Below are positions 26,160-63,097 of a DNA stretch of 64,000 nucleotides, one piece after another; position 1 is the first letter of the stretch, and every line of letters starts with the position of its first letter. The notes under the pieces are model-generated. The model was given only the letters and a program-made list of their open reading frames with translations. It did no database searches and was not told the origin of the DNA. Location of the stretch: assembly GCF_001194135.2 (NCBI RefSeq), contig NC_068987.1, positions 81,035,635 through 81,099,634 on the forward strand. The letters run 5' to 3'. The translations under genes and the position numbers were made by a program. Source of the stretch: Octopus bimaculoides. Lineage: Eukaryota.

Positions 26160-26340
26160 GGTGACCGGTAATAAAATCAGAGGCAAAAAAGTCACAGTAA
26201 AGTCACAATTTTGGCTAGGACAAAAATTCACAATTAATTTATGGTGGCCGGTAATAAAGTCACGGGAAAAAAGTCACAATTAATTTTATGGGATTCGGAT
26301 AAAACCCCACCGGATAAAACTCCTGTGACTTTTTTTTTAC
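26160..26340. repeat. Array of short aaagtcac(a)/ggataaaa motifs, possibly a MULE-like subterminal repeat region
   Basis: At least 5 copies of aaa(g/t)tcac, two ccggtaataaa units, and an inverted tgtgactttt at ~26323. Confidence 0.45.
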
Positions 26341-32175: not shown

Positions 32176-32455
32176 TTGAGTTGGTTGTTATTCATGTGAA
32201 ATGGGGCATTGAACAATCTTTATTAATACTGAATGTTGCCACTATCCATATATGAAACGGCAAAGGAATGCAAGATGAAGGAAGGATTTTGAATTTTAAA
32301 GTTGTCAGGTGAATTTGAGTTGGTTGTTATTATGTGAAATGGAGCATTGAACAATCCTATTAATGCTGAATGTTGCCACTACACATTATATGATGTAGCA
32401 AAGGAATGGAAGTTGAAGAGAGGATTTTGGAACTTTTAAGGTGTCTGGTGAATTC
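32176..32455. repeat. Diverged ~140-bp tandem duplication
   Basis: gagttggttgttatt...gtgaaatgg.gcattgaacaatc...ctgaatgttgccacta occurs twice, 140 bp apart. Confidence 0.85.
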
Positions 32456-34339
32456 AGGAGATTAAGAAACTTGAACCTTTGAATTGTTATCGAATAAGGA
32501 ACAAGGCTAGGATTTATCGGTTGGTTGTTATTGATAAAAAGAAAGTAATAGAGAAATGAAAGAAATTCAGTGTTATTGCTCAATACATTTAAAGATAGCA
32601 TAAGCATTGAAGAAACTTGGAATGAAGGTAGTCAATATTGAAAATATTACATGATATAAGCACAAGACTACACACTTTTATGAGGGGAAAAAGCTGATTT
32701 ATCCAGCTCATGGTTTTCTTGTAAATTAAGAGGCCATCTATGTTATATATGAACTAAGCTTGTCTTGCTTTTCAATAGGCATTCTAAATAGACTGTAATT
32801 AGGTTTTTAAGTAGGTGTTAATTATTTCTAGAATTTCAGAATTATATAAATGCTACAGTTGCACAATTCAAAAAAGTAGTAAGCTGCATATCTGAATAGT
32901 CTCATACTGATAAGCGAAATAGAAACCAATTGATATGAATAGAAGAAAGAGAATAGCTTTGATATCACAAAAACAATATTATTTTCTTTGAAGAAAGCAC
33001 TTGAAATAAATCATTAGGAGTCCTCTTTGGCTTGAGAGATGCAAAACAATGAAATAACGCAAGTTAAATTAATATATTCCAGCAATTTTGGTAGCCACTG
33101 AAAATAAATTTGCAAGCAAATAAATGCTGCAGATTTATTATAATCATTTATATGTTGGTTTTAGTATTTTTCAGAAGACTAAAACTGACATGAATCAGGT
33201 AAATTTGTACTGAATACTTGAAGATTAGTGCTGTGATTAAGTATTACACAGCAAGAGTCATAGTCATTCCCTTAGTAGGGATTAGTATTTAATTAGAACA
33301 TAAAAATTTGTGTTTTAAATATTAAGCGCAAAAGCTATTTTGAAAGACAGGAAGCCATATAATTTGTCAATGTTTTAACATCCACTTTCCATGCTTGCAT
33401 TTCTCTGATACTCATCATGTTGCCAAGCTTCACTTGTTTTCAAGCAGTGTAATATTTCTCCATTGCTGGATATGTTTTCACTAAAGGTTGGAGACAAACA
33501 CAAATTATATGCATGTTGTACTCATTTACAACTAGTGCACGATATTGAAACAGGGAAATACAAACATACACACGCTGACATGCACATGTGTTTGCATGTA
33601 TGTGTGTGTATGTATATGTGTATGCATGTATATCATCATTATCATCGTTTAATGTCCGCCTTCCATGCTCGCATGGGTGAGATGGTTTGACAGGAGCCAG
33701 CCAGGCAGATGCCTGCACCAGATTTCTGTGACTGTTGTGGCAAGATTTTTACAGCTGGATGCCCTTCCTAACACCAACCACTTTACAGTATGGACTGGAT
33801 GCTTTGTAAGAGGCATCTGCACTGACAGGGTCATCAAGTAACTTGCATGACAAAAAACTTTTGAGAGGGGAGGGGGCATTAGAGGAGGTGATCTTGTGTC
33901 AGATGATGAAAGGTTGTAGTAAGACAGACACAGAAACAGGCATCTTGCTGTAGAGGAGGTACAAGGTTATGACAGAGAGAGAGATCAGCAATGAGGACGG
34001 AAACAGGTGTGCTGCTGTAAAGGAGATACATGGTTACCCAACCTGAGGGAAGTGCAGGAGAAGGAGAGAGAGAATGTGAGAGACAGCACTATAGAAATAG
34101 TTGAAAAGGCAGTGAGTTGGCAGAAACGTTAGCACGCCAGGTGAAATGCTTAGTGGTATTTCATCTGCTACTACGTTCTAAGTTCAAATTCCACCAAGGC
34201 TGACTTTGCCTCTTAAAAACTCGTATTTTTTTGTTGTTAAGTCTCTATGTCTAATAGAAAGATAAGAGTTTCTTCCCTTCCAGGATGAAGATTATTTTCA
34301 GAATATTATCCCATTATGCACCGTTTTGAGTATTTATAC

Positions 34340-35168
34340 NNNNNNNNNNNNNNNNNNNNNNNNNNNNNNNNNNNNNNNNNNNNNNNNNNNNNNNNNNNNN
34401 NNNNNNNNNNNNNNNNNNNNNNNNNNNNNNNNNNNNNNNNNNNNNNNNNNNNNNNNNNNNNNNNNNNNNNNNNNNNNNNNNNNNNNNNNNNNNNNNNNNN
34501 NNNNNNNNNNNNNNNNNNNNNNNNNNNNNNNNNNNNNNNNNNNNNNNNNNNNNNNNNNNNNNNNNNNNNNNNNNNNNNNNNNNNNNNNNNNNNNNNNNNN
34601 NNNNNNNNNNNNNNNNNNNNNNNNNNNNNNNNNNNNNNNNNNNNNNNNNNNNNNNNNNNNNNNNNNNNNNNNNNNNNNNNNNNNNNNNNNNNNNNNNNNN
34701 NNNNNNNNNNNNNNNNNNNNNNNNNNNNNNNNNNNNNNNNNNNNNNNNNNNNNNNNNNNNNNNNNNNNNNNNNNNNNNNNNNNNNNNNNNNNNNNNNNNN
34801 NNNNNNNNNNNNNNNNNNNNNNNNNNNNNNNNNNNNNNNNNNNNNNNNNNNNNNNNNNNNNNNNNNNNNNNNNNNNNNNNNNNNNNNNNNNNNNNNNNNN
34901 NNNNNNNNNNNNNNNNNNNNNNNNNNNNNNNNNNNNNNNNNNNNNNNNNNNNNNNNNNNNNNNNNNNNNNNNNNNNNNNNNNNNNNNNNNNNNNNNNNNN
35001 NNNNNNNNNNNNNNNNNNNNNNNNNNNNNNNNNNNNNNNNNNNNNNNNNNNNNNNNNNNNNNNNNNNNNNNNNNNNNNNNNNNNNNNNNNNNNNNNNNNN
35101 NNNNNNNNNNNNNNNNNNNNNNNNNNNNNNNNNNNNNNNNNNNNNNNNNNNNNNNNNNNNNNNNNNNN
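34340..35168. other. Assembly gap (N run); other gaps at 38356-38883, 56072-56170, 20646-20655 and 56523-56531
   Basis: N runs visible in the sequence. Confidence 0.99.
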
Positions 35169-35194
35169 ATATATATGTATGTATATATATATAT

Positions 35195-35414
35195 AATGTG
35201 TGTGGAGGTGCAATGGCCCAGTGGATAGGGCAGCGGACTCATGGTTGGAGGATCGTGATTTCAATTCCCAGATCGGGCATTGTGAGTGTTTATTAAGCGA
35301 AAACACCTAAAAGCCCCAACTTTCTCTCCCTGTTTTTTGAGTAACACTGTGATGGACTGGCGTCCTGACCAGCTGGGGGGAACACAAATTCCATAGAAAC
35401 CGGGAAACCGGGCC
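35195..35414 (+). mobile_element. SINE with family D tRNA head and a different 3' body
   Basis: Head matches the 16740-17101 element up to gcgaaaacacctaaa, then continues gatggactggcgtcctgaccag...gaaaccgggaaaccgggcc. Confidence 0.7.
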
Positions 35415-35424
35415 TATATATATA

Positions 35425-35614
35425 TATATTAAAAATGGGGAATGTCAGTTAATGGGATTAGCTTATATTTTCCGTCCATAAAAACCTGTTGACCCATAAC
35501 CACTTCAAAATATGGAGGGGTTTTTAGGATCTGATGATACACCATAAAGCTAAACCCTTATGGACAGGAAACCAAAGGTAATCCCATAAACCAGCCTTTC
35601 CCATTTTTAATATA
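35425..35614. mobile_element. MITE with ~57-bp imperfect terminal inverted repeats inserted in TA
   Basis: tatattaaaaatggggaatg...atgggatta...tccataa versus ttatgga...taatcccat...cccatttttaatata. Confidence 0.7.
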
Positions 35615-35679
35615 TACTGTTCTACATCTTAGAGTGTGCTTCTTCTTTCGGATTTATGTTTTCTACAAACGATACATAC

Positions 35680-35724
<45 letters not shown>

Positions 35725-37587
35725 TTCATCTACCAAATCTACTTACAGGGCTTTGATCTGCCTGGTCCTGTAGTAAAAACACTATCTAAAGGTGTTATGT
35801 TGTGAGACTGAACCTGAAATCATGTAGTTAAGAAGTGACATTCTTAATTATATTTCCAAGTTGTAAACTAGATTAAGAATCAAATTTACTTTCATTAAAC
35901 ACATTATCATATAAGTATGATTATGCTGCAAACTTAGTGAATTATGTTCAATTTGCCATTCCTCAAACACAAATTAATAGTTTGCTTCAATGCACACAAC
36001 ATTATGCATGGGTCTTAACAAATACTGATTTTGCTTTTGCTATTTGTATTAATTTACTCATTAGAGATATAATTAACTTGATATACTAACTATATGAACA
36101 AAATTTTAAAAGTTGTAAAATGTTTCAAATGTTAAAGTATTTACTTTTCCTTTTTATTTCAAACACTTTTGTTTTAGTAAATTTATATGTATGAACAATA
36201 GTCATAATTTTTGCATTAACTGTAACACCATCATAATTATTCTGACATCAATAAATAATTACAATGTGTAATTGTTGAGACTGTTGATTTTTCATGGCAT
36301 CAGTTGGTGTCACGAAGAACATTCGACTTTCTGTCATTGAAACTAAAAATAACATGAGAAATGTTTTAGAAAATGATTTAATTAACTTAAACTAACTGAT
36401 CAAAATTTAGAAAATTTCCTTTCTCATTTTATTATTTCTTATGCATGTATATGTCATTGTATGTGTAGCTTTATGTGTGTATATGCATTTGTGTATTTAT
36501 GCATATATGCATTTGTGTGTATATGTTACTTAACTATACAATAGTATTTCTAGATATGAACAACAGAGCGCATGGAGGGAGAAATCAGGATAAACACAAG
36601 TTTATATTTAATATAAACTTTTGTGTTTATCCATATTACACACACACAATTCAAGCAGATTATAATTTTTTTAAGGACTAACCTAAAACCTATGTTTGAA
36701 TATATGTTTGGTTGCTATGTCTGCATCCACACTTTTTTCAAAGTCCGGTTTACTTGTATTCATCTTTATATTCAGGTTTTGGATTCTGTTTTGGTTGACT
36801 TTACATTCCAAACTCTTATGAGCTAATTAAATAATGACCAGTCAAGTACCAGTAGAACTAATCAATTCTTATTTTCTACACAATGTATGTCTTGTGCCTA
36901 TACTCAAAACTATTAGACTGTATCTGTTTTGTTGAAATAAATTTTCTAATTTACTCCTAGCAGAGTTGCATGCTGTTTGATCATATGCATGTGAACTACT
37001 TCTATTGATTGGTCAGTTGGAAATATTTTCTTAGTTTTTAGCATTATGAATGTTGACCTTTGTCTTATATTTGAAAAAAATTATATGTAATGTTCTTATA
37101 ATCTATAACCTTAATGAGATGAATTAAATTTTGAGGGTTTTAATCTAGTATTTAGCATTAATCCTCATTAACAATGATTACACTTTTCTTATGTCATTCT
37201 TGCTAAATGTTATATATTTGGCATAATTCTGAATGGAGGTGAAACTTAGTTAACAGCTATTACATCTTGTTTTCTATGGTGTAGGGAAGTGGAGACATAT
37301 TTATCCATGACCTCTATCTCTACTGACAACCTCTGCTATATACTTGGATACTTGCACAGACTAAGGCATAAATTAACAGTTTTCTCCTTGTCTCTCTATC
37401 GATTTTTTTTTCCCATTAGTTCTCTCTCCAGGCTTCTTTCAGTTTCCATCTACCAAATCCATTCACGATATCTCTTGTTGGCACAAGGCTATTATAGAAG
37501 ACACTTGCCCAAGGTACCACACAGTGAAACTGAACCTAGAAATATGGTTAGGAAGCAGACTTCTTACCACACAGCCATGCCTGTGCC

Positions 37588-37593
<6 letters not shown>

Positions 37594-37659
<66 letters not shown>

Positions 37660-37695
37660 TATGCATTTGCGTGTGTTTGTGTGTGTGTGTGTGTA
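37594..37695. repeat. (TA)n followed by (TG)n microsatellite
   Basis: Directly visible. Confidence 0.97.
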
Positions 37696-38883
37696 TGTAA
37701 AAGCTCTACTCTCTGTATTGAGTACTCTTTCCTTCATTTGTAAACAAAAATACATATATTCTTGCATGCAACCAGAGGCTAGAGGTTTAAGAGGTATTGC
37801 CCGAGTGCTGATTATGTGGAAAAATTTCTTTATCTTTTACTTGTTTCAGTCATTGGAATGTAGCTATGCTGGGGCACCGTCCTGAAGTTGAATAAATTGC
37901 TCCAGCATTTTTTTTTATCTAAGTCTGGAACTTATTCTATCATTGTCTTTTTACTGAGATGCTAATTTACAAGGATGTAAGCAAGCTAACACTGGTTGTC
38001 AAGTAGTGAATGGGGGACAAGCACCACCTATAAATATCATAATCATCGTCATCTGTTAAAGTCTGTCATACCGGCCATGATGAAATACCACAAGGTATAA
38101 AAAATACGTATTCGTCTTTATATTTAATCCTTTATATTGAACACTCAATATTTCATCTATTCAATAAGACATATTCCATATATTCAATAAGACATTCAAT
38201 ACTTTATTTCATTGTACCATCCATTTTTATTTTATATTATATATTGTATATTATATTATATATTGTATATTCCATATTCTATATCCCACATTGGTTTTGC
38301 AGGAATATAAATAAAACATAAAAAACAGTGTTGGAACTCATTTAAACAAAATAATNNNNNNNNNNNNNNNNNNNNNNNNNNNNNNNNNNNNNNNNNNNNN
38401 NNNNNNNNNNNNNNNNNNNNNNNNNNNNNNNNNNNNNNNNNNNNNNNNNNNNNNNNNNNNNNNNNNNNNNNNNNNNNNNNNNNNNNNNNNNNNNNNNNNN
38501 NNNNNNNNNNNNNNNNNNNNNNNNNNNNNNNNNNNNNNNNNNNNNNNNNNNNNNNNNNNNNNNNNNNNNNNNNNNNNNNNNNNNNNNNNNNNNNNNNNNN
38601 NNNNNNNNNNNNNNNNNNNNNNNNNNNNNNNNNNNNNNNNNNNNNNNNNNNNNNNNNNNNNNNNNNNNNNNNNNNNNNNNNNNNNNNNNNNNNNNNNNNN
38701 NNNNNNNNNNNNNNNNNNNNNNNNNNNNNNNNNNNNNNNNNNNNNNNNNNNNNNNNNNNNNNNNNNNNNNNNNNNNNNNNNNNNNNNNNNNNNNNNNNNN
38801 NNNNNNNNNNNNNNNNNNNNNNNNNNNNNNNNNNNNNNNNNNNNNNNNNNNNNNNNNNNNNNNNNNNNNNNNNNNNNNNNNNN

Positions 38884-39307
38884 AACCCCCTGCACTGATA
38901 GGAACTGTATCGTATGTAGATTTAGCCCACAAACGAACTGCAAAACCAGAAATGTGGTCTATAGTATAAGATGTACAGAGGGACGATGCAGAAATAAGAC
39001 AATGACATATGTAGGCGAAACAGCAAGGAGCATAGGGGAGCGGGCAAACGAACATTGGAGGGAACTTAAGGAAGGGAAGAACTCATCAGTTCTGTACCAG
39101 CACGCTGAGCAAGAACATAGAGGCTCAATCAACAACATAGAAATTAAAATCTTATCTACACATAGCAGTGATGCAGCACTTAGAAAAATTACTGAAGCTA
39201 CACACATAATAGAAGAGAAACCTAGCCTGAATAGGAAACTAGAATGGAACACACACACACCACTAACAAACCACAAACCACAACATATGACAACATGTTA
39301 CCCATAA
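38884..39307 (+). mobile_element. Penelope-like element GIY-YIG endonuclease domain (C-terminal ORF end; 5' part lost in gap)
   Basis: Stop-free from the gap edge: TPCTDRNCIVC...CKTRNVVYSIRC...MTYVGETARSIGERANEH...LYQH...RKITEATHIIEEKPSLN. This has the VY/YVG (GIY-YIG) motifs, the catalytic R and E, and the Cys-rich linker of Penelope elements. Confidence 0.9.
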
Positions 39308-39836
39308 ACCAATAATAATATGATCAAAATATAATACAATACATAGATAAACAAATGGAATTAAATACTACATACGTTAACAAAATTTAATTAAACACAA
39401 AAAAAACACAAAAAAAACACACAGTAGATAAAAAAACAAACAAACAAACAAACAAAAAAAACACACACACACACATGAAAAAATAGATAAATAAGAACAA
39501 ATACAAACGAACACGTATTAACAGAGAATATAGGTGATACAGACACTCCCCATACACACATGCACTTACAAAAGACATAGACACATTGAAGGACACGCAT
39601 GCGTAGACACATACAATAGGAATACAAAATACAAAATGGCTGATAGTTAGCAAGGTGAGACACACATAAGAAAGAAGGAAACAAAGGACCACTGATGAGG
39701 TTACAGAAGTGTGACGAAAGAACTCTGGCCGAAATAAGATTAAGATTAATGTAATATAAAGCTGAAGCAAATCAACACCAAATATACAGTGCGTGTGTTT
39801 TTATTGGCTAAACTGGCAATATGACCATCCCCAAGT

Positions 39837-39877
<41 letters not shown>

Positions 39878-40519
39878 CGACATCTGATGTCTGTTTTCTA
39901 TGCTGGCATGGGCTGGACAACTTGAGAAGAACTGGCAATATATATATGGATGGTGGGCTTTTTTCAGTTTCTGTCGACCAGATTCATGCACAAGGCATTG
40001 GTTGGCCTGGGGCTATAGTAGAAGACACTTGCCAAAGGTGCTACACCGCGTGACTGAACTGGGAACTACGTGATTGAAAAACAAACTTCTTTTCACACAA
40101 TTATGCTTGCACCTCTTTGTTAAACTTAATTTAAAACAAGTTTTTATGTAGTGCTTTTGATATGTAATTTTATTTGCTTATATATATTTTATTGCAATGT
40201 AGTCACACATATAAAGTTGAGAGTTACCAGATTTCTGTGTACAAAGCCTTTTTGGAACATGTTTATTGGTAATTCTAATTTTATGATTTAAGAAAATACT
40301 ATCTTTATGTTGTATATATTTTTCTTGTAATTCAAAGTTGCTATGCAACATATAGAGCAGAAGTAATTCTCATGAGAATTTAGCTAGAACTTTAGGGTAC
40401 ACATTTCATTTGTTGTTCTGTAGTTTGGTGTTCTAGTGAAAATATATCTGTCTAGCCCAAGAAATGATTATGCAACATAGAGCTACCAATGAAAGAAACA
40501 TGAACTTTTCAGTTCAACT

Positions 40520-40940
40520 ACAGCTATCTTGAGTCTTGTTAAAGACAAAAGACAGTGATATTGGAAATGGAAGGAAGGGTCTTTGACTGGAACTGGATAT
40601 CTAATGGAATGGTGAGAATGTGTGGAACATAAACCTCTTTTCATTTGGCACAACCAGCCACAATAATGGCTTTGATCAGATGGTGCATAAGAATTTTGAC
40701 AGCTAGTCTTATATTGTTACAGAGTTTTGGTGCAGTCAAGTTTAATAGCACATAATGTTGAAGGTTGTGAAGAATGGCTAGAATAGGCTGAAGAGAACTG
40801 AGATATTCTGTTAGACAGTAGGCAGTATTGTTAATGTCAGCTACAGTGTTAAGTAACTTGTACCATCTGGATTGGGCTGTTGAGTGATGGTGGCACTAAT
40901 ATCTTGCACAATATTTTTGGCAACTAGACTGGCATGTTTA
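40520..40940 (-). mobile_element. Degenerate Helitron PIF1-like helicase relic
   Basis: Manual minus-strand translation YCLTEYLSSLQPILAILHNL..LLNLTAPKLCNNIRLAVKILMHHLIKAIIVAGCAK*KEVYVPHI matches the Helitron motif EFLNSL...LRNLNPPKLCNGTRL...GEDVFIPRI. Confidence 0.8.
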
Positions 40941-41471
40941 GAAAGCCACAAATGGTTTCTATAGTTCCGTGATTCTAAGATAAGCCCTCAGTATCATTTC
41001 AAGAGATGTGTTTATAATTGGTTTTTCCAACACTTCTGTAGTCATGCCATACATTTACTGAGTGAGTGAGTACTGTTAGATGAAGAAAGGATACAAAAAT
41101 CAATTAAACATAACATACCAGAAAATTTACACTTATTGGGAATCAAATGTGTAAATATCATTTAGAGACTAACAAGAGAGAGATTATGATAGATGGGGGG
41201 AGAGAAAGATTAAGGTGAAAGACAATGGTAAACTGATGTACTTCATATTAACATACCTCCTCAACTACTTCTCCAGTACAACTATCAGTCTACATCTCTT
41301 TTTATTAACTCATCCTTATTTTATTCCAGTGGGTTGTTGAATGTGGGGTTCTTTGTGTTCATGTGTTACAGTGGGTTGCATCTTGACCTCCGTGAGAAAT
41401 CTTGTAAAGATTTGCTGCAAAATAGAGACTTTGTTTCAATGCAAACAGACATTGACACTTATATGTATATA

Positions 41472-41692
41472 CCAAGTGGGTGCTGAAAAGTTCCTGGCTT
41501 TAAGGGTATCATGAAAGGCCTGGTTGGAAGCCCAACCTTCTGAGTTCTTTTACAGGGCTTAGAAAAACTGAAGGATTTCTGCAATGAGTGTGTGGATCTG
41601 AGGGTGGAATATGTTCAATAAAATCATAATTAACTGATCCTCCTGTATTGTCTTTTGCCCAAAGCCAGGAACTTTTCAGCACCTTCTTCATA
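41472..41692. mobile_element. mariner-derived MITE (~220 bp)
   Basis: TIRs ggtgctgaaaagttcctggcttt (~41479-41501) and aaagccaggaacttttcagcacc (41661-41683); TA flanks. Confidence 0.9.
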
Positions 41693-41987
41693 TAGTTATA
41701 ATTATATAGCATAATGTATGTTTGATTCATATTTGTAAATTATATCTGAAGAATGAGTTATATATTTAAATGCATGCACATCCACAAACATACACACACT
41801 CTCGTTCACTTTATTAATTTATTACATAAATGCAGAGAAATTTTTTTAATTGGAAATTTTTTTTAAAAAGTAAAAAGGAAAAATTTCAAATTTGTTATAT
41901 TTTTTGATACATTACAAACTGAAAAAAAAAAAAAAAAACTAGAATAAATTGATTATTATTAAATTATATAAGTATAATTATTTTCAG

Positions 41988-42101
41988 GTGTGATATTCTA
42001 AGAAAAATAGAAAATATCATATTAAAAATTTTGAAGTCACTTGAAAAGGGAATTATGCCTTCACTTGAATACACTAATCATTCTTCATGGGATAATATCA
42101 A
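41988..42101 (+). CDS. SPO11: SPO11 coding exon 2 (CDILRKIENIILKILKSLEKGIMPSLEYTNHSSWDNIK)
   Basis: Acceptor ttttcag|G; 114 nt, phase 2/2; donor ATCAA|gcaagt. Aligns without gaps to the human SPO11 exon-2 peptide as recalled (SEVLASIENIIQDIITSLARNEAPAFTIDNRSSWENIK), 17/38 identical including IENII, SL, P and SSW.NIK. Confidence 0.88.
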
Positions 42102-44819
42102 GCAAGTATTTTCATTATGTATTTTTTAATAAAATATCATTTTCATTTTTTGCAATATTGTTTGTTAATGAAAGCATGAAAAAATTACTTTAAATCCACA
42201 GATGATGCAAAATTGATAACCAGAAGTCAAGTTTTTATAATTGCTAAAATTTGAAAGCAGTTTTGATGTTCATTATCTGTTATATATTTTCAGTTTCATT
42301 TTTTGAATGAATTCTCTTTCAGTCTCTCTTTCCTAACTCTTTTATAGTTATACATAAATCAATCTACCCACACACATGCTTACCTAGACATATTGGCATT
42401 GTCATGATTGCATGGTTAAAATATTTGCTTCTCATCTTCTTGGTTTTGGGTTCAATCTGCTTGTGCAGCACCTTGGGCAAAAGTCTCCTACCATAGCCTT
42501 GGGTTAACCAAATTCTTATTTGTAAAATTTGTTTGATTGAGACTGCGGAATCGTTTTAGATGGCCGATTGGCAGATTTAAATCATTGTTCTGTTAAAATC
42601 ATAACGTGGTCCTTGGATTTGTGAAGCAACATCCAGTCTTTTTCAAGCATTTAGATAAGGTCCCTAATCTGATGATAGCTTCCTCCTTTCCTTCCCTAGC
42701 CCTGAATGACCAAAAGATGGTTGTGGCTACTGTCCTTCTTTGACTAAATTGTAAAACAATAATAATTGGTATATAAAACAATAGCTAATTGTAAAGAGTT
42801 GGAACTAATACTGCAAGCTGTTTTTTTTCCCAATACGCTAATGATTTTGCTAATGCTCACACACACATGCATGCACACTCAAATAATCCCATACAAAGAT
42901 ACAAATATCATTACATGTTAACCCACATGTCTGCACAGGCACACACATACACAAAATTTATATATGTAAATAAAGTAAATAGTTATCTTGTTAGCTTTAA
43001 TGAAGATTACTGCAACAGCTTTTTTATGATCAACACATCTATTGACTAACTGAAATCCTGTGTAAGTGACAATTGTATGAACACTTGTGTATTCAATATA
43101 TTTCAAAGATTGGATAAGATTGAATATTTGAAATACAATCTACTTTACAGGCTTTCACCTGTTTATCATCTTCTGACTTTCTTCAAAAGGTTGATCTTAA
43201 GCTATGTCAGAAGGTGAGTATTAAACAGTGGGATTAGACCTGAGCACCTTTTCATTATGAAACAAATTTCATGACCATTTGGCCATGCTTTGTCCTAATC
43301 TATTTGTCTGTTTATGCATAGACAAGATTGCAGAAATTAACAATCTGCTTAGTGATAATACTAATTTCTCAGGATTCAGAAAGACAACACTGCTCAATTA
43401 AAAGTTAAAATTAAATCAATTTCTGCTTCAAACAAACAATATGATCTCCTTCATTTCTCCACATTGAAAAATTCACTTGAGCATATATTTATGGAACAGT
43501 GAAAATGCACTAACAGTACAGTTTTCTCTTCAATAATTTCACAAGCATACACACCAACACATCCGATTGCTAAACAATTACATAACGTTATCAACAATAA
43601 ACACCAGTGAGATACAGCATATGTTCATCTGATAGGTTCCTGGGGATCTTAAATGGTATAAACCAAATAGGCAATATATCTACCTTACAACTGAAAAGAG
43701 GAAAATAGAAATTAATTCTGAGAGAAAATAATATCATTAGATTAGTTGGGAATGGTAATAAGTTTAGTTTTGAATTGTAGTGATGTGCCAAAAGTTATAA
43801 TCATATGCAACATAACAATAGAAACTTTGAAATATTTTATTAATTAATCATATTTTAGTTTATGATTACAATTGAATGATTATTCAGTATAAACATTTGG
43901 TTTTGGCATATCATATGTATATAATTTAAAATAATATATGAACAAATTGAAAACAATTCCTGATTGATTATTTTAATTGTCTGGCTTCAAAAATCAATCA
44001 GGCCTGCTTTATCTCTCAAGCACTTACTTCCTCCAAAGAATTTTAATTTCTGTTTAATTAGCTACTGTGGTGAGTTCAAATCAGGCTGAAGCTGACTTAG
44101 CCTTATCTACAGTCTGAGTACTGCAAAGATCTACAACATAGTGAATTTCAATCCATTAGATGTAGAACTACTGTGAAACATGGTTACTCTTTTTTTTTTA
44201 ACAATTTAAATAAACAGTTCACAAGATAAATTGTTGTATGTTTATACTCAATATCAAATGATGATCAATGCATAGAAAGATATGAAATTAATATACTGAA
44301 GGAAAGAAGCACTTATTCATGGAAATTAGTTTTATTTTAGAGCACTAAATCAATGTTTTCATTATTTGATCCCAAACTCGCAATGGATGCTCGGTTTTGT
44401 TTGCTTTTTTTGTCAAACTGAAACCAATGATATTTTTTATTCATTATGAATAGTCTTATATAATGACTGCAGTTATGTAGTTCAGAAACTAATTTATATT
44501 TAGAAAGTTATTTGTAATAATGATTTCTTTTATAATAAGCCTTTCGTTATTCATGTAGGTAAGAGAGCCTTGCAGTTATGATGTTAAAGAAATTAGAAGC
44601 TGCTCTGTTTAATATTTTTATAAGTTGTTTACAAAGGAAGTCTGTTTGAACAACTAACAGAAACAGTCATGGATCTCAAGAAATTAGCACTTCTTCAAAT
44701 ATCTATTGTTCTAATACTGAAAATAGGAAAAAGTTTACACTAGGATTTTAGCCAACACTGCATATATAGACAGATATGAACACCTTGCATTATATTCAAT
44801 ATTTTTGTGGACAGGAAAA

Positions 44820-45350
44820 GTCAAGAAAAAATTCACACTAGTAATTTATAAACATATAAAAAATTGGCTAGGTAAACACTTCACTGAAGTTCCCCAGAGC
44901 ATTGAGATCATAATGCAATCACATTCAAGACTGCAACTGATAATCATAAAGATGGCTGTAAAAAGTATCTTAAACCTGTGAAGATCATCAACCACTGATT
45001 AGCAAAACTATATCTAAAGACTTGAAGAAAATGTGAAATATAGCTATAACACAGGTTGGTCGTTACAAAGATTTGATAGCTTCTTCAGCTCAAAGATTCT
45101 AGAAACATTAGATGTAAGCATAGAGGCACCAGTGGTATGCAGGTATATCAAGCATGCTGTAAGTTAAATAGGAAACTACTTCTCTAGCCAAAACAAACAA
45201 TAGAATAGTAAGAGCAAAGTTAATTTCTGTAGGAAAAAGAATATCTCAAAGGGATAGTCTTTCTTTGCTCTTCATCAGTTTGACACTATAATACCTCTAA
45301 ATAAAATGCTACACCAGCATGGAAATGATTAGAGGTATTATGGTGATAAT
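44820..45350 (+). mobile_element. Degenerate R4/Dong-like RT relic
   Basis: Scattered motifs across frameshifts: GCK; caaagatttgatagc...attctagaaacatta (decayed KAFDS...ILETL); atatctcaaagggatagtctttct (decayed IFQGDSLS). Confidence 0.55.
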
Positions 45351-48300
45351 TAATGCTACTGTATATGAATGAACGCACGCAATATGCAAGAGTTGAAAAA
45401 TTACTGGAAATTCTTAAGAGAGATGTAGAATGGTTCAATGAGTTGAATTGCTGTAAGAAGTGAAATAATCTAACCATGTCAGACGCTAGTCTTTCTTTAG
45501 GGAGAGGAAGAAAAAGAAAGTGTGTGTGTGTGTTACTGGCAAGGTTGAAAAATTGTACATGAGAAAATGAAATAAAGGAGTGATATGCAGAGGTAGATGT
45601 AGAGAAAGAGGTGGGAAAGCCAGTAAGAGATGATGAAGGTAGTATGATTGGAAAGAAAGTAAAGTGTGAGGGAAGAGTGCTCAAAATTTGTAACTTGTTG
45701 AAAGTTGAGAGAGGTGTAAAGATCTAGGTCAGGTACTGTGTGCCAAAAGGGCACACAGTAACACAGATACACGTACAGAAGAGAAGAGAAGGGGAAGTGA
45801 ATGCTAGTGGTAAACAAACAAGAGACTGTAAGGAATCTGTGGTGATGGTCAAAATCATAAAGATGTCCAAGTAGCTGAAGGCTGAAATAATAAACAGAAC
45901 AGTAATCAAGCACACTGACTAATAAAATTTGAATATATGCCACAAAATGTATATAATAATATGCATAATGAATGTATAAAACTGAATGTGTATGACCAAG
46001 TTGTACATAGACGTACATTGTATACCACGATGCAAATAGTGGCCATACACAAATGAAAACAGTTTTTGAGGTGGGATGAGCTAAAAGTGAAAGAGATTCA
46101 AAAAGTTGAAGCATGTACATAGGCTCTCTGGGGAAGAGGTTTCCCTTGTATTATTTACTGTGGGTGTGAGCAGAAATTTGCGTACAAATTTTATTTCTCT
46201 TTGCTAAGTAAATGTGCATCCATGCAGGTAACTATCTTCAGTTAAAAGAAATGTGATTTCATTTTGAAACCTTATCTGCACATATTTTGCCTTTATATGT
46301 TAGTTGTAAAATGCATGTGCATGCAAAAATGTATAGCTTAGAAGAATTAGGCAAAGACTCTGTGAGTTAAAAATGGGACAAAATAAATGTACCAAGGCTA
46401 CTTTGAAGAGTGGATGACTCATAAAAATCAATATCTTTTTTGATGCTGCAATAAAAGAATTAGTCTGAAGAAAAATACTTAAGAATCAGTAAATTAAATA
46501 AAATACAACACACATAAGTAAAATCATATGTCAGGAAAGAATTTAAATGTTTTAGATTAATACTTGAGTGAACTAATTGTTGAAAATATGATCTTAGGTG
46601 TCCAACTTTGTAGTTGTTCCAATCATATGCTATAATTATTTTATATTCAAACAGAAATTAAGTAAATTTGTACAAATAGACAGATAAAGCAAGAAAAAAT
46701 AATTACAGTATTTAAGCTACATCACATACAGTATTTAAAATAATTCAGACAGAATATATTTAACACAAGCACATGATTGTAGAGGTCATCTGCAGTAGAA
46801 AAATATTGTAAAATAACTACTGTGGGATTACAAGAATATCTAATAGAGAATCAATGCAACCAATACAAATATCTATAAATGTGTTTGGAACATATTTTGT
46901 CTTTAGAGAGGCCAATGGGTATAAAAAAGAAATGTATCAGACAGCATTAAAACAACAAAGGAATCTATAAAAAAAACAATAAAAATATTTGGGAAAAAAG
47001 AGAGAAACTTTTAGTATAAAATGTTATGTGGTAGAAACTAGAAAATTTCTTATACAAGGATCCACTTTATTATGAAAACTCTGGTTATGGAATTCCATAT
47101 TTAAGGTCATTGTAAAGTAAGATCGAATTTTGAGATGTGGCTGATGATTGTGTCGTTATGGAAGCTAGAGTAAGGTAAACTTAAAAAAAAAAATTAAGTC
47201 GTGATGTGTGTATAAAAAAGATACATTATTTTTTAGAAATACTGTTTGATCTGGATTGTGTGTCTGTTGCTGCTGCTGTGCAGATTTTCTGTTTATTGTT
47301 GTTGCTGCTGGATTTAACTTTTACAAATGTACAGTATAGTGTGTTACCCTTCTTCAAGGTGACATGAAAACAGTCATCAGGTGGAAGTGAAGGCAAAAAG
47401 GAGAAGGGATTATGTTAATGTTTTAAAATGGTTCGATGTGTGAGAGAAACTCAGCCACATTGCATTTGTGACACAAAAGACAAAATTAGCGATGATTTCA
47501 TGCAGATACTTCAGTAACTATCTAACCATTGTTTTCTCATAGGCATGATGTAGTTCTTAACATGGAATGGCTCCTGAATGTGTGGGTAAATGATCAGGCA
47601 GGATGTAATTTGCTGATAAGCAAATGAAAGCTAAAAATATTTTTCTTGTTTATTCCTTAATGTATTCCTCTTAATTTTTTTTATTTATACTATGTTGTAT
47701 GCGTTTAAAATAGTTATTTTCATGCATAAAAATGGTTTTATTTTATACTTTGTTTTTTTTCTGAAAAATGTTTTGTGGATGCACATCTAAAACTATAATA
47801 TGGAAGTCAATGAGAAGATAGGTTTTGCATTACAAAATTTGCCAAAACCAAATGCATATACAGGCATGACAAATTTACTAGATGCATGCTTTGGAAATTC
47901 TCCTGACTGATGACATAAATTACAAAATGTCTTTGAAAGTGTACATGAAACCATGTTCTGGGGCATGCCAAGTATAACTTCAAAATTTTCTTGCCAAACA
48001 CAAGCAAGTGAGATTGGTGTTTTCTAGATACACCTGTTCCACTATACTACAATATATCACAAGAGGAATTGTTGAAATTTTCTAAATACAGAGGTCTGAA
48101 AATAACTATCCTGAATGTGGGAAATGCAAAAAGAAAATAATTCTATGGTGCTAGATATGCTATGATTGATATAAAGATTAATAAATATATAACCAAAATT
48201 GTTCTCATTCATACATGAAAAAGAAATACCCCAGATAATAGAAATTATCAATGCAATAGAAATTATGCATTCAGTATAGACACAAATGTTACATACAGCC

Positions 48301-51300
48301 ATGTTATGCATATACGAACCACAGAATATGTATACTTAATAATGCATTGAAAGTGCACAGTATATGAGATGATACTTTATGTAAAACAGCAAATTCTTAT
48401 ATAGACACAAAGCCAGAAAATTGGGGATCAAAAGATTAGATTATCAAATCAGCCTAGTTCTTGACTGCCTTTCAAAGTAGATTGGATAAAATACCAGTTT
48501 CCCCTCAACAGGTTTTGAACTCAGAATATAAAAATCTGCTCCTGAATACTTCTAGAATGTCTTGTGAATGAAATTGGTAGATGAAAACTATGAAAGCCTG
48601 TTGTGTGTGTCTTCCAATTTGTGCCTTGACATTGCTTATGCACTGGGTAAAACAATGCCGTTGCATAGACATTATCATTGTTTGTCTGCCATAAAAATAT
48701 GTTTAGCCGTTGAACAGTTTGTCATTCAAAGCAGCAGAGGAATAAATATCTTACTAGGAAACAAAGGTTAGTAACAGGGAGGATGTCCAGCTCAAAAAGT
48801 CTTGTCTATCCCATGTCAGTTTGAGAAAAGTGGACATAAACATGATGATGATGATATATTACTAATCAAGATGACTGTTTTAATGTTAGTATTTATTTTA
48901 ATGTTACTGATGGATAATAGTCAAAATAAAAGCTTGTAGTATTTAAAATCAGAATGTAATTATTTGAAAGTAAGTATTATAACTCATTTAGTCTTACCAC
49001 TTTACCATTGTTGCTAATTTTCATTGTCGGAAGCTGATTTTTACTAATATTCTTATCCATAGGAAAGAAGAATCTTGTAAAATTTACCATTTGTGACTGT
49101 CTGTTTCTCTAAAGAAATATATAATATAATCAAGAGAAAGGGTATGCAGGACAATAATAATAATTTACTTGGATTCTTCTGTTTTCCCAGCATTTAGTGC
49201 CTGGTGTCTTCTAGTTTGCAAGATCTATTGATAAATGAATAAGAATGCTATTTAGATATTGAGAGCTGATCAAATTTTAATGGTCACCATTAAAACATTT
49301 TAGAACTAAAAATATCAACGATGTTTTTAAGTCAAAATCATTGATGTCAAAAGCCACTTTTTGCTTATTTTCATACTATAAAGTAAATTTTGCAAAATTC
49401 AGCTTATTTCAAAGTTAAGCATTTTTTTTCCATTATTTTTGATGCCAAACTATTTTTTGCAACTATCTTCAATGTTAATACTATATACCCAAAGTCAATA
49501 GAGACTACTTGTTCACATTTCTTATTTTCTTTAAATCTCTTATCTTATTTGAATGTTTTACAATTCACTTATTTTGTCATTTAAATTGTTTGTTCTTGCA
49601 TAGTTTGTATAGATGAAATAACTAATTTTGCCAAGGAAGTATTTTCTTGTAAAAATTAGCAATTAATTATGACTATAAAGCAAGGAAATTTTGGCATTGT
49701 TGCTAAAGATATGATGTTTTAAATATAATGTATTAAAATTTTCTTGATGTTTCACCCTTCTTTTCAATGCTTTTAGTTACTTTTGTGTCACATAGATAGT
49801 TTGAAGCATAGAGTATTTGAATAATGAAGAAATTTTTTGGTTTTTTTTTGTTAAAAAAAATTGCTGCCACATATGTATATGACGTTTTCTTAATTTTATA
49901 TCTGAAAAGAAGAATGGATGTTACCTTAGGTTAGTGAATAAATTTTATTTATGAGAAAATCACCTAGATTTATCATCCATTGATTTGTGAGAAATCATAT
50001 GGTTGTTAACTTATTGAATGTCAGATGTGTAGCTATTCCAATTCTAACAATGACTTTAAGGTTGATGAAAGTACAATAATTTGATTGCTGATAATGTTAC
50101 CTTGCAAAATATTTTGTTTCACATGTATGGACACACACACACACATAAAGAGAGGGAATGTCTGTGAGGTTAACAATCTGATTTTTTTTTATTATAAATC
50201 ATTGATAGTGCTTTAACATGCTTTTCTCTGTGCTTGTATGTGTTGGATAGGGCAGCTGTAGACCATTACCACTCATCTTGGTCTTTCGTCATCTTGTCTG
50301 GAAGGCTCAGTTCCTCAGATTGACTATCATTGCTTATTTCTTGCTTTTCTTTGCTACAATTTCATTCTATCGTGAACACCTAACACCTTTTCATTTAGTA
50401 CTCACCAGCTAATAGCGTATATTGGTCTCTCCTTCATACATTTGCCAAAGCTGGGTGTATAATATTAACTTGCATGAAAATCAGAGCACAAATGAACTAA
50501 GATAGAAACTAAGCTTCTAACTGATAACTCTCCTGTGTATTTGTGCCTTTGAAGTGTTAGTCTCTCCTCTATCATCTGGCAGTAAATTTGTTGTGTACAT
50601 GTTGGTTGCACAAAATAACAACAAAATGTTCTTACTCGTTCTTTTTCTATATATTGAGCAAAAGCCATATTGCAAATGGTGCTGGGTTTTGTAATGGTAT
50701 ATGTCATGGTATATGTCATCTTCTACTTAAGTTATTGTTACTTAAGTTACTATTAAAGAAGACAAGATATATTACCAGTTGGAATGGATGATCATAGTTT
50801 CTGTGTTATAATAAGTAGCAGATAATATTTATATGGAACACTATGAAAATTTAACTCTAAGAGATCTGAAAAGTGCAAAACTAACCAACAATTTTGCTCA
50901 GGTATGTGGATGATACCTTAATTCTGTAGAAGCATCAAAACTATGTCCATGTCATACTGAATAATATGACTGCATATAAATCTATACTACAGAAAAGGAA
51001 AATAATAGAAGTACTTTGCTGTACATAGAAGTTGCTATCAAATCATTTATGTATCAAAAGCTAACATCCATTCAATTCAATATAAATTATGAGCTCAACC
51101 ACTATTATAGTGTTGGGAAAGTTATTGCTATGGTCTGGCTGAGAATTAAAAGTATAACTTCAATATATAATATTCAATGTAACATTAAATCAATTTTCAG
51201 GATGAACACTGCAATCTGCAGTTCTTTAAACAGAGTTAAATCTACTCAAATGCAGGAAGAATTGAAATCATTGCATATATAACATGCCAATCAATTGTGG

Positions 51301-51429
51301 TTGGGTCTACAAAAGGAAAACAGGAAAACACATAAATATTAGAATCATAGAATATCAAAAAGCCAGTAGAAAGTATAGAAAATAGAAGGTAGTGTTAGAG
51401 TATGAAGAATTTAATCTGAGAATCTAATC

Positions 51430-52160
51430 TGTAAAATTAGTGCCATTGTATCCTAATGTAGCTGCTAGCAATGAAAAATGAGTTTAAATAGCTCTTAAAT
51501 TGTCATGTATTTGTCCTATTTATCTATGGTGTAGTAGATTGAATCTTGTGTAAAATAAAAGTTCATGGAGATGAATATAAATATTATAAATATGACACCT
51601 GATGATAAGAGATCAAATCATTTAACTTGCAGTAGTTAACATAAGATGAAAATCCGAGATTAACAGTCTGAGAAAAATAATTCTGTCAGTATTAATAACT
51701 TAAAACATCTAATTTTCATTTTGAGTTTAAGTTTTTACTTAAAATTCATATACATCAAAACTGTGTTTTCATATGTGAAGAAGTGAAATTGTTTTATAAA
51801 GAAAATATGTCGTTTCTGGAGACTTGCCTTACCAGGAAAATAAAATCAATATTAAAATGCTGTATATTGATATATTGGCAGATAAGCATTGGCAATTGTA
51901 GCAACAGAAAAATCAGTAAAGCATAACTCCATACTTCTATACTTTATGCATATATGTTTATATTAGTAGTAGTGACGATATTAGTAGTTGTACTCTGAGT
52001 TTTGCAGATCCAGTTATCATCTTATTAGTGATAGTGTATCCTAATATGGCTGCTAGTAACAAAAATGGGTTTAAATATCACTTAAATTGCCATACATTTG
52101 TACTATTTAACTTTGCTTTAATAGATTAAAGCTTGTGTGAAATAAAAGATCATGGAAACA
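51430..52160. repeat. Diverged local duplication (~130-bp block repeated ~590 bp apart)
   Basis: tgtatcctaat...gctgctag...aaaaatg.gtttaaata...cttaaattg.cat...atttgt.ctattta...agatt.aa.cttgtgt.aaataaaag.tcatgga at ~51445 and ~52035. Confidence 0.8.
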
Positions 52161-53525
52161 TGTAAATGTGACAAATCTGACAAAAGGCTTTTTCTCTATT
52201 GCCATTTACCAATAATCTTTTGACAATTTTATACTAAAGTTGTCATTAAGAATGACTTTGACATTGTACCATGGAAACATTTTCAGTATTGTTAACATTT
52301 GGTATCTATCACTATTCCTTTGAATTATGAGCTCTCTTTTTCTATGTACCTTTATGGAATGTGTTAATTAGGCTCTTTCTAATCTTTATCAACCTATTCA
52401 GATGATCTGAGTTTTGTCATCTCACATATTATGTATCTTGACATCAATGGCCAACATACGGTTGAAGAATTTACATTCAGTATATAGTTTCAACACTTTT
52501 TCTAATGTTAAGTTCACACACTTGTTACATTATTTCATTCTGGTGTGCACACATTCTTCAAAACATCCTATAATGTGATCATGACAACTTAGTCTTATTC
52601 AACTGACATAAAACATTTCATTCTTAATTAACATTTAATGAAAACCAGCAAACTCTTTTTAAATACTAGCTCTTATAAGATTGAGGATATGATGACTGCA
52701 TATTTTTCACATTAAAAATTTTATTGCAATGACTGGGCTTCCTTTCCTATGTTACAAAGTCTATCTTGAAAAAATTAGGATACATTCTACATTACAGTAC
52801 ATTACAGCTTTCACAAGATTAAGAATTCCTTCCATTACCCACATTAAAAAGAAAAGCAAAAAAAAAAAAACGTAAAACATTTAACAAGCAAACTCTCACA
52901 GTAACCCTTTTCAAACATTAGTTCAGTGCATTCACCAAGAAATGAGCTGTTCTGTCTCTTTTTAAAATCTGATACTTCAGCTGTCTTGGCTTTGTAAAAC
53001 ATGCTGACTGTATTAATATCTATATTTAAACACACTTGTTGCAGCTGCCCCGTCTATTATTCACTGTCTTACACAATCCAGTTCTTTTCAAAACATTATG
53101 CTTGCTCCTTTTAATTCAGGACTGTATCACTTTCATACATTTTCTTGTTTCCTTTCAAACAAAATGTGCAAGAATTCAAACTGAATATTACTTGCATTAC
53201 CACCTTTTACCCCTTGTTGCTAATTTTCCTCAACTTAAAAGAGGTTAATATTCCTTAGTTTAGAAGATGCTGGAACCGTCCCCTTTATCTAATATGATTA
53301 AAAAACATACAATTCATGAATGTACCATATTCTAAGATGTTCAAATCACTCATTAAATTTCACACACACACACACACACATACAAACACACTATCTCTCT
53401 CTCTCTGTCACTCATGCACATAGACACTCTCTCTTTCCTATACATGTGTGCATGTGTTTTATATATATATATAGTAAACTATGAAAACTGTTACAGTAAT
53501 GCATATGAGTGAATGTATAGAGATA

Positions 53526-53526
<1 letters not shown>

Positions 53527-53573
<47 letters not shown>

Positions 53574-53585
53574 AACACACACACG
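53527..53585. repeat. (TG)n microsatellite; further (CA)n runs at ~53360-53385 and ~54055-54110
   Basis: Directly visible. Confidence 0.95.
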
Positions 53586-54068
53586 TATGAAACCATGACA
53601 CTGGAATATGATGTAAGCAAACTCTTTAAACTGTTCAACCAATGCCAGTATAGAGAATGGACACTAAAAAGTGATGATATATATATCTGCTTATATGTAT
53701 TTATGCATGTGTGTGTGTGTATATATGTAGGTATACACACATATATATGCACATACGTATATACGTATATATACAATGCATACATGAATATACACGTCAT
53801 CATCATCCTTGTTTAACATCCACTTTCCATGCTGGCATGGGTTGGACAGTTTAACTGAGGACTGGCAAGCCAAGCGGCTGCACCAAGCTCCAATCTGATC
53901 TGGCAAGGTTTCTACAGCTGGATGCCCCTCCTAACACCAACAACTCTGAGTGTGTAGTGGGTGCTCTTTTATGTGCCACCGGCATAGGAGCCAGAGATGT
54001 GACACTGGCATCAACCATAATATACTTATCAACATATAAATAATTATATTTATACACGCACACACACA

Positions 54069-54109
<41 letters not shown>

Positions 54110-54151
54110 ATATATACATGTGTGTGTGTCTGTATATATAGAATGTATATA

Positions 54152-54860
54152 CAGGATGTGGTGAATAAACTGTCACCTAAATTACGCAAAAATGAAAATA
54201 ACACTGACATCTCATTTTAACAGATATATTTACAAAAATTACATAAAAATATCTTGAAATACTAAAGTGTAAATTTATTCAATAAAATCGACATTGGCTT
54301 CAACCATGGCTTCCAGACAACTTTGGAATCTCTTGCAACTCTTCTGGACAGTCTCCTTGTTTAAGTTGGTGAATGCTGCCATAACCCTTGCCTTCAGGTC
54401 ATCTTTGGTGGTACAAGGAATTTTGTTGGTCTCTTACTCAACTGTGCCCCACACATAATAATCAAGGGAGTTGCAGTCTGAGGAGTTAGGTGGCCAGATA
54501 TTTGGGGTGGGGTGGGGTGGGGTGGTTTCAGAAATTGCTTGACAGCCATGACTAGGTTCTGCTTGTGTAGCATGGTGCAGAGTCCAGTTGTCAGACATAG
54601 GGTCTTCCAGGATACCCTCTTCACCCAGGGCAGCACTACCTCCCCCAGGCACTTGATGTTGAGTTTGAGGCTGTGTGGGAAGATGAATGGAGGCATAAAA
54701 TCGCCATCATTAGTGATCACTCCAAACATCATGATATTGACTGGTGTTTGATTTTTATCACTATCAGTACATGTCCTCAGACTGACATCCAAACACTCTG
54801 AAATGTTCATATAGGAGCTTCCAGCATGAATGCCATACAGTACAACAAATTGATTGACCA
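54152..54860 (-). mobile_element. Internally deleted Tc1/mariner transposon
   Basis: TA|CAGGATGT terminus at 54152. Minus-strand peptides: IWPPNSSDCNSLDYYVWGTVE (WPxxSPDLNPLD motif), MMFGVITNDGDFMPPFIFP, and N-terminal HTH-like GIHAGSSYMNISECLDVSLRT fused directly to the catalytic part. Confidence 0.88.
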
Positions 54861-54864
54861 GACC

Positions 54865-55636
54865 TCTGACTCCCAAGACATTGTCAGTTACCCTATTAAG
54901 TTTCTCAACTCATTGGAGCCAGCAGGGCTTTCACCTCACATTCTTAGGAAAAAGGTTGGATGCCCAAATATGCTAATCAGAAACTTGCTTCCACCTAAAT
55001 AGTGCAATGGGACTTGCTTAGTAATCAAGTACTCTGGTGCCCCACTTGATTGAAGCCACCATTGCTACAGGGTGTGGGAGGGGTGAAAATGTTTTCATTT
55101 CAAGGATGCAGCTTTATCCCTTGGGGTCAGACATGCCGTTTAGCTTCCGCAAATTGCAGTTTCCGGTGAGACCATGCTTCACCATGTCCATCAACAAATC
55201 ACAAGGCCAAACACTATTGGCAGCAGGCATCCATTTGGGGTTTTCCATTCACTCAGGATAGAAAATTGATAAACTGATTCCTTATAGGATTTACCACTAA
55301 AATTGGCTGCATCCCATTTTCAACCATAACTTTTACCAATTTTGACATATTTTGCTCCAACTTGATACCAGCATTACTTAGGACTCATGGGATCTTTGAA
55401 TGCTTTAAGTTCTCAGAAAAAAAAAACAATCGATGAGTAGAAATAATCGATAAACTGATTCCTTATGGGATTTCCCAATCAAATTTCCTGCAACCCATTT
55501 TCAGCCAAACGTTTACCAATTTCAACAGATTTCACTCAAATTTGATGTCAGTGTCACTTATTTTGGTTTGAAATAAAGTGCTTCATCACTTAATAATCCT
55601 AACTTAATTCTGGGCAATGCTGGGCTATACTGCTAG
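54865..55636 (+). mobile_element. Helitron 3' end: helicase relic, ~180-bp tandem duplication, terminal hairpin and CTAG
   Basis: SYPIKFLNSLEPAG...KVGCPNMLIRNL...CNGT...FRKLQFPVRPCFTMSINKSQGQTL. Duplicated gataaactgattccttat.ggattt units at ~55268 and ~55450. Ends ctgggcaatgctggg-ctatactg-CTAG|T at 55633-55637. Confidence 0.9.
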
Positions 55637-60048: not shown

Positions 60049-60515
60049 GTATCTGACTGATTAGTTTTGTCTTTCATTAAAGACCCATCAGGAATCACCA
60101 CAGATTATGAGCTGTCAAAGTTCAGAAGCAAATTATTTATTGCAAATATAAGTATATTAAGACAAGCATAATGAAATTTACATAATGGTTCAGCTTTGAT
60201 GGTCAGTCATTAATAAATATAGTACCAATGCAACATACCTGTGAATATGCATGTGAAAGTCATATGTTTAGTAACATTGTGAAAATAGATCCAATGGATA
60301 AATCTCAGGGGCTTTGGCTGTAAGAACTGAACCGACTAGTTTCATCTTTATTTGAAGATTCATTAGTACTAAAATTCTTAATACCTAACCATTCGTCATC
60401 CTCCTATCATTATGTAAATTTCAGAAATACTTCTCAAGATTTTGCGATTTGTTTCAAGCTGCAGAGGTTAAGTAATCTCTGATGAGTCTTTAATGAAAAA
60501 TGAAACTCTAGGTTG
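60049..60515. ncRNA. Three degenerate type-I hammerhead ribozyme motifs
   Basis: 60049-60099(-): CTGATGG-GTCTTT-AATG-AAAGAC-AAAAC-TAATCA-GTC. 60331-60370(-): CTAATGA-ATCTT..AAGAT-GAAAC-TA-GTC. 60472-60515(+): GTAATCT-CTGATGA-GTCTTT-AATG-AAAAAT-GAAAC. Each has core or stem mutations. Confidence 0.62.
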
Positions 60516-63090: not shown

Positions 63091-63097
63091 TAGCATA

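Follow-up and report, generated by a model that had tools for sequence, protein, structure and literature searches.

A GC-type donor at the end of a conserved 38-codon exon of SPO11 in Octopus bimaculoides

SPO11 is the enzyme that breaks DNA in meiosis. In mammals, its SPO11-beta isoform includes a 38-codon exon 2, which SPO11-alpha skips (PMC3966222, PMC7165175, PMC12203943). The segment encoded by this exon is needed in the mouse for robust binding of TOP6BL (PMC11922745), and SPO11-alpha has been tied in the same species to XY pseudoautosomal recombination (PMC12203943). A second described system relevant here is the class of introns that begin with GC: such donors make up less than 1% of all donors, have a stronger flanking consensus, are enriched among alternatively spliced sites and have frequently been exchanged with GT donors in the course of evolution (PMC2490688). 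The two meet in a 64,000-nucleotide (nt) stretch of contig NC_068987.1 of Octopus bimaculoides, referred to below as the window, whose forward strand carries the first two coding exons of a SPO11 gene, the second of them ending at a GC. A first-pass annotation of the window had likened this second exon to the one that distinguishes the two mammalian isoforms, a difference on which the literature agrees, and had proposed that a similar switch could operate in a mollusc.

The second coding exon and its GC donor

The segment at 41988-42101 of the forward strand is exon 2 of the octopus SPO11 gene, 114 nt or 38 codons long and in phase 2 at both ends (Table 1). The acceptor reads aattattttcag followed by GTGTGAT, the first base of the exon being the G at 41988, whereas the 3' end reads GATAATATCAA before the boundary and GCAAGTATTTTC after it (ATCAA/GCAAGT). 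As the coding part of exon 1 is 167 nt long, two codon bases are carried into exon 2. An end at 42101 then gives 114 nt and phase 2 on both sides, whereas with an end at 42105 the exon has 118 nt and finishes in phase 0. Both parts of the corresponding earlier claim are borne out by this arithmetic and by the sequence, namely that the exon is exactly 114 nt long and symmetric when spliced at the GC, and that the GT at 42106 would lengthen it to 118 nt and shift the phase.

The window exons belong to a SPO11/topoisomerase VI subunit A gene. The product of exon 1 is identical (100%) to residues 1-56 of the O. bimaculoides SPO11-like protein XP_052825732.1 (P0178) and to the same residues of O. 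sinensis SPO11, and the exon 2 peptide CDILRKIENIILKILKSLEKGIMPSLEYTNHSSWDNIK is identical (100%) to residues 57-94. It also matches residues 46-82 of human SPO11 with 46% identity (tblastn E 8.6e-5), the human query, 97% identical to a database primate SPO11, serving as a lead only. The identification of the exon as SPO11 exon 2 thus holds. In both current RefSeq proteins, XP_052825732.1 (412 aa) and XP_052825733.1 (346 aa), residues 1-94 are identical to what exon 1 and the 114-nt exon 2 of the window encode, and the sequence runs on after exon 2 as SSWDNIK/FSVEFGLETIMEPKTSKISFGLKRSRKKF/DLLLKLL. The catalytic exons lie beyond the window end, and the domains were read from the RefSeq protein: XP_052825732.1 contains the TP6A_N domain (PF04406, 6e-21) and the TOP6A/Spo11 Toprim domain (PF21180, 3e-58; both Pfam). 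The same protein can be aligned with the structures of archaeal Top6A and yeast Spo11, the alignment beginning inside the exon 2 segment. An exhaustive HMMER search with the 94-residue peptide of exons 1 and 2 recovered the O. sinensis SPO11-like isoform X2 at 98% identity, and the current O. bimaculoides RefSeq proteins fall in one sequence cluster with O. sinensis isoform X1. A word-indexed search with the same 94-aa peptide returned only old, fragmentary O. bimaculoides models; because it missed the 98%-identical O. sinensis orthologue, its negatives are unreliable.

Compared with the U1-complementary consensus CAGGTAAGTAT, the GC donor matches at 9 of 11 positions. The run from +3 to +8 (AAGTAT) is unbroken (6/6), and the two mismatches are the A at -1 and the C at +2, the former being forced by the lysine codon that the intron splits as AA/G. 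In a scan of 42040-42160, from 62 nt upstream of the exon end to 58 nt downstream of it, phase 2 is kept by just two GT or GC dinucleotides: the GC at 42102 and another GC at 42057 with 3/11 U1 matches. The GT at 42106 has 6/11 matches and is without G at both -1 and +5. Two octopus species provide the protein evidence on the junction, as XP_052825732.1 and XP_052825733.1 of O. bimaculoides and XP_036360700-702 of O. sinensis read SSWDNIK/FSVEFGLE. The K/F junction needs AA from exon 2 and one base from exon 3, and the donor is therefore the GC at 42102. With the GT at 42106 the exon would gain CAAG, and exon 3 would no longer be read in frame. In a Logan RNA contig of 926 nt (L004, run SRR8281693) the homologous exons are joined as GACAATATCAG/ATTTAGA, giving DNIR/F at the same codon position. 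Its source is probably another cephalopod, as the exon 2 part of its protein shows 72% identity. The GC at 42102 is the donor needed to keep the frame, and judging from the protein models it would be the site that the spliceosome uses in vivo. The earlier proposal of this GC as the productive donor accordingly agrees with the K/F junction in RefSeq, with the conserved position of the intron and with the phase.

We consider it very probable that exon 2 is a constitutive second coding exon, spliced through a GC-AG intron in which weakness at +2 and -1 is offset by extended U1 pairing. A U2-type GC-AG intron would connect the exon with exon 3, which lies over 21.9 kb further on. Pairing with the U1 small nuclear RNA (snRNA) would be weakened at two positions, by the C at +2 and by the A at -1, and full complementarity from +3 to +8 would partly compensate for this, a pattern common among GC donors. 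A T-to-C substitution in this lineage, at a site strong in all other respects, is the likeliest origin of the GC. The exon encodes the N-terminal helical segment whose mouse counterpart is required for binding of the TOP6BL subunit. Intron 2 would belong to the U2-type GC-AG class, an assignment made from the donor alone, with the exon 3 acceptor outside the window. Like other members of that class it has GC at +1/+2, and the rest of its intron-side donor GCAAGTAT is a near-perfect consensus, consistent with the compensation described for such sites (PMC2490688). It is unlike them in having A at -1, where the general donor consensus (A/C)AG/GT(A/G)AGT has G (PMC2490688).

In favour of this interpretation, a matrix built from 33 U2-type GT donors mapped in the SPO11 genes at seven comparison loci gives 4.57 bits to the flanks of the GC site, compared with a median of 4.5 for those donors and 0.77 for the GT at 42106. 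Several points weigh against it. The matrix is drawn from a small and cross-species set and serves as a rough guide. The RefSeq models fix the position of the junction and are no proof that the newer assembly likewise has C at +2. An older gene model (UPI00071E0A56, here P0001) used the GT at 42106. Finally, an A at -1 combined with a C at +2 makes a weak donor on the exon side, and some skipping, or some use of the GT at +4, may occur. The importance of the finding is modest, as the exon and the exon 2/exon 3 junction are already present in the public RefSeq annotation, and as GC-AG introns are a well-known minor class.

Conservation of the exon and of its donor

The homologous exon was located in the SPO11 loci of seven other animals, namely three amniotes, a limpet, a mussel, a sea urchin and a coral (Table 1). 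In all seven it begins after two codon bases, and the octopus acceptor falls at this same codon position. It ends in each after base 2 of the codon that follows N-I, S-V or N-T of an SxWxN[IV] motif, and the octopus ATCAA/GC boundary lies at that very point. These correspondences indicate that the 114-nt length and the phase 2/2 arrangement were inherited from the eumetazoan ancestor, and that the boundaries of the 38-codon exon predate the cnidarian-bilaterian split. An architecture that allows in-frame skipping would therefore be ancient, though skipping is documented in mammals only.

The dinucleotide itself shows a different pattern. Intron 2 begins with GT in all seven other animals, and GC is confined to the octopus among the eight species. 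The first-pass annotation had left open whether vertebrate intron 2 also starts with GC, and this is not so in the turtle, Mustela or Rhinopithecus. The octopus GC is thus a change peculiar to its lineage rather than a regulatory feature held in common, and the ancestral donor was presumably GT. The -1 position divides the species in another way: the limpet, mussel, sea urchin and coral donors have G there, those of limpet and mussel scoring poorly at +3 to +6, whereas all three amniote donors are without it, as in the octopus, because they split the same lysine or a glutamine codon. In the SPO11-like protein of the feather star Anneissia japonica (P0153) the exon 2 peptide (RNEVLRKLEVVMEKVIESLRQWEAPVIELGNRTSWQNV) occurs twice in tandem, which may be due to duplication of the exon or to an error in the assembly.

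Table 1. Features of the SPO11 locus in the octopus window, and exon 2, its donor and the U12-type intron at seven comparison loci
Feature or locus	Position	Strand	Length	Description
Coding part of SPO11 exon 1	20919..21085	+	167 nt	ATG at 20919; ends in phase 2; donor CAG/GTAATT
Intron 1	21086..41987	+	20.9 kb as assembled	repeats; GIY-YIG-like open reading frame (ORF) remnant; N gaps 34340-35168 and 38356-38883
3' splice site of intron 1	41970..41987	+		aagtataattattttcag; reads ttttcag before G
SPO11 exon 2	41988..42101	+	114 nt	encodes (R)CDILRKIENIILKILKSLEKGIMPSLEYTNHSSWDNI(K); phase 2/2
GC-type 5' splice site	42099..42109	+		CAA/GCAAGTAT; G 42102, C 42103; 9/11 U1-consensus matches
5' part of intron 2	42102..64000	+	>21.9 kb	exon 3 past the window end
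Competing GT	42106..42107	+		CAA/GTATTT (CAA/GTATTTTC); 4 nt downstream; 118-nt exon, phase 0
63-nt ORF	43151..43213	+	63 nt	acceptor ctactttacag, donor CAGAAG/gtgagt; exon in P0001, omitted by current RefSeq isoforms
Sea turtle (L001)	U12-type intron at 11318		exon 2, 114 nt	exon 2 donor ACA/gtaggt
Mustela, stoat (L002)	U12-type intron at 6113		exon 2, 114 nt	exon 2 donor AAA/gtgggc
Rhinopithecus, monkey (L003)	U12-type intron at 6775		exon 2, 114 nt	exon 2 donor AAA/gtaggc
Patella, limpet (L005)	U12-type intron at 4819		exon 2, 123 nt	exon 2 donor CAG/gttaac
Mytilus, mussel (L006)	U12-type intron at 15903		exon 2, 126 nt	exon 2 donor AAG/gtacca
Strongylocentrotus, sea urchin (L007)	U12-type intron at 4701		exon 2, 114 nt	exon 2 donor GAG/gtagga
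Oculina, coral (L008)	U12-type intron at 19560		exon 2, 114 nt	exon 2 donor AAG/gttaga

Exon skipping and the other readings of the donor

The octopus exon resembles mammalian exon 2 in its homology, intron positions, length and phase, and in the frame-preserving nature of a skip, which in the octopus would join exon 1 to exon 3 as IPRIPR/FSVEF. The resemblance extends to the encoded peptide, with its 46% identity to the human sequence and the requirement of the mouse segment for interaction with TOP6BL (PMC11922745). It is unlike the mammalian exon in that mammals and the turtle have a GT donor, in that its flanking introns exceed 20 kb as compared with 1.2-3.3 kb in the amniotes checked, and in that skipped isoforms are documented and widely annotated in mammals, with none found for the octopus or other invertebrates in the proteins retrieved. 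One might nonetheless regard the exon as a regulated cassette, in which exon 2 can be skipped in germ cells owing to the weak GC donor, with an alpha-like SPO11 without the TOP6BL-binding segment as the product, the switch being an old one. Such a cassette would draw on the exact homology to the mammalian alternative exon and the in-frame skip, on a donor without G at -1 as in the three amniotes, and on flanking introns of a length that favours failures of exon definition. It would also be in line with the enrichment of GC donors at alternative sites, and with the regulation of let-2 in C. elegans, which needs the GC (PMC2490688). The symmetric length, which had been taken as a pointer to cassette use, carries no such information, because the same 114 nt and phase are found in sea urchin and coral, so that the architecture is ancestral and was already present in a cnidarian. 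The retrieved proteins speak more directly to the matter: 39 of 175 SPO11 proteins join exon 1 to exon 3 (LAS-R-FEDSVGLQ), and all of these are placental or marsupial. All five annotated octopus RefSeq isoforms retain exon 2, differing instead in a 48-residue Toprim segment and at the 3' end, and the cephalopod RNA contig keeps it too. Among about 45 invertebrate SPO11 proteins, N-terminally truncated models apart, none has lost it, and five constructed alpha-like octopus proteins had no exact match among 15 billion sequences, all these negatives being at the annotation or protein level and of low power. Furthermore, the limpet, mussel, sea urchin and coral have donors with G at -1 followed by GT (though weak at +3 to +6 in limpet and mussel), and the context of the mouse alpha isoform is the XY pseudoautosomal region (PMC12203943), for which there is no known octopus counterpart. 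Taken together, a regulated cassette appears quite unlikely. Its more specific form, that the doubly weakened donor between introns of more than 20 kb permits regulated skipping in germ cells and yields an alpha-like SPO11 unable to bind TOP6BL, we regard as quite improbable, and an alpha/beta switch ancestral to bilaterians is a speculation that these data neither support nor refute. Were the specific form true, skipping of exon 2 would tune SPO11 outside mammals, either by convergence or through an inherited in-frame architecture, and regulated skipping in the octopus gonad would extend alpha/beta control of meiotic breaks beyond mammals.

The remaining readings concern the donor itself. The GT at 42106 could be the donor really used, giving a 118-nt exon, or a strong competitor that yields out-of-frame, unproductive transcripts. 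It is a canonical dinucleotide, the older model P0001 joined the exon end at 42105 to a 63-nt ORF at 43151, and in a naive weighting a penalty of about 7 bits for the C at +2 is roughly as large as the advantage that the GC site has in its flanks, by our own estimate from consensus frequencies. Set against this are its phase 0, which allows no in-frame join to the conserved exon 3, the conflict with the RefSeq proteins of two octopus species and with the intron position in seven animals, and its poor match to U1 (6/11, without G at -1 and +5); P0001 is moreover a 116-aa fragment without SPO11 homology after the junction. Use of this GT as the principal or a strongly competing donor is in our view very unlikely. 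Alternatively, the C at 42103 could be an assembly error or a rare allele, with GT as the normal donor at the same position. The assembly behind the window is a draft with gaps, the window having five N runs, and GT occupies the position in 7/7 other species; on the other hand, errors of a single base are seldom seen where an assembly covers unique sequence. The surrounding AAGTAT provides the kind of strong flank in which a GC would be tolerated, and conversions of GT to GC are common in evolution (PMC2490688). We therefore hold an error or rare allele to be very unlikely, and favour a constitutive exon spliced at a genuine GC donor.

Introns, older gene models and Toprim-segment isoforms

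The first-pass annotation had put both flanking introns at about 21 kb. This stands for intron 1, which is 20.9 kb long with 1.36 kb of N gaps, but not for intron 2, which is longer than 21.9 kb. Exon 3 was not found in the window by tblastn with the human, O. sinensis and cephalopod contig proteins, the O. sinensis protein matching at exons 1 and 2 only, and the leader peptides MLILQMEGH and MYTSR of other old models were likewise not found in the window. The octopod SPO11 gene is extremely large: the O. sinensis gene ranges over 757 kb, and an O. vulgaris model that starts at about exon 3 covers 133 kb, as against 8-22 kb at the seven comparison loci. Within intron 1, a 117-aa ORF (window 38954-39307, forward strand) that adjoins an assembly gap gave a weak, sub-threshold match to the GIY-YIG nuclease (E 0.003) in a Pfam scan of long intronic ORFs. 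It is probably a decayed mobile-element remnant, possibly a Penelope-like one. An Rfam scan of the window gave zero matches. Directly 5' of the SPO11 ATG lies a low-complexity region of AAT/TAA and poly-A runs with a 10-N gap (window 20263-20721, 20525-20574).

Two older O. bimaculoides models went astray at the end of exon 2. P0001 left the exon at the GT at 42106 and continued into the 63-nt ORF at 43151-43213, its sequence after the junction having no SPO11 homology, and A0A0L8H9U7 (169 aa) reads through the exon end into the intron. Most simply, these errors are failures of gene finders at a non-GT donor, and the locus is thus a concrete case of non-GT donors fragmenting automated annotation. 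A0A0L8H9U7 further begins upstream of the SPO11 ATG, with its own ATG at 20718 in the low-complexity region, and this N-terminal extension is probably spurious. The 63-nt ORF is open in both relevant frames and after a 114-nt exon 2 would add 21 residues in frame. We rejected it as a true SPO11 exon, as it shows no SPO11 homology in either frame and the current isoforms omit it; an exact look-up in the sequence collection found no protein with this segment.

All seven comparison loci also have a U12-type intron, at a single conserved site within the part of the gene that encodes the Toprim domain (Table 1). Spliced alignment placed it at the same phase-1 position in five loci; the Mytilus intron was resolved as AT-AC, and in Patella the placement is by the 5' motif only. 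The 5' site is GTATCCTT in most loci and ATATCCTT...AC in Mytilus. A CCTTAA-like branch site is recognisable in five of the six loci in which the 3' end was read, that of the sea urchin (TTCTAAT) being weak and the Patella 3' end unread. Spo11 has been stated to be a major-intron gene outside chordates (PMC12956336). The presence of the intron in limpet, mussel, sea urchin and coral suggests a conflict with that statement. The two exons that flank the U12-type intron encode a segment of about 48 residues, which holds the Toprim glutamate of the VEKDA motif, and the same segment is missing in annotated isoforms of three animals: X2 of the octopus O. sinensis (P0123), X3 of the clam Ruditapes (P0128) and X11 and X5 of the newt Lissotriton (P0137, P0146). 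This recurrent in-frame isoform, predicted from its sequence to be catalytically dead, is a better candidate than exon 2 for conserved alternative splicing of SPO11.

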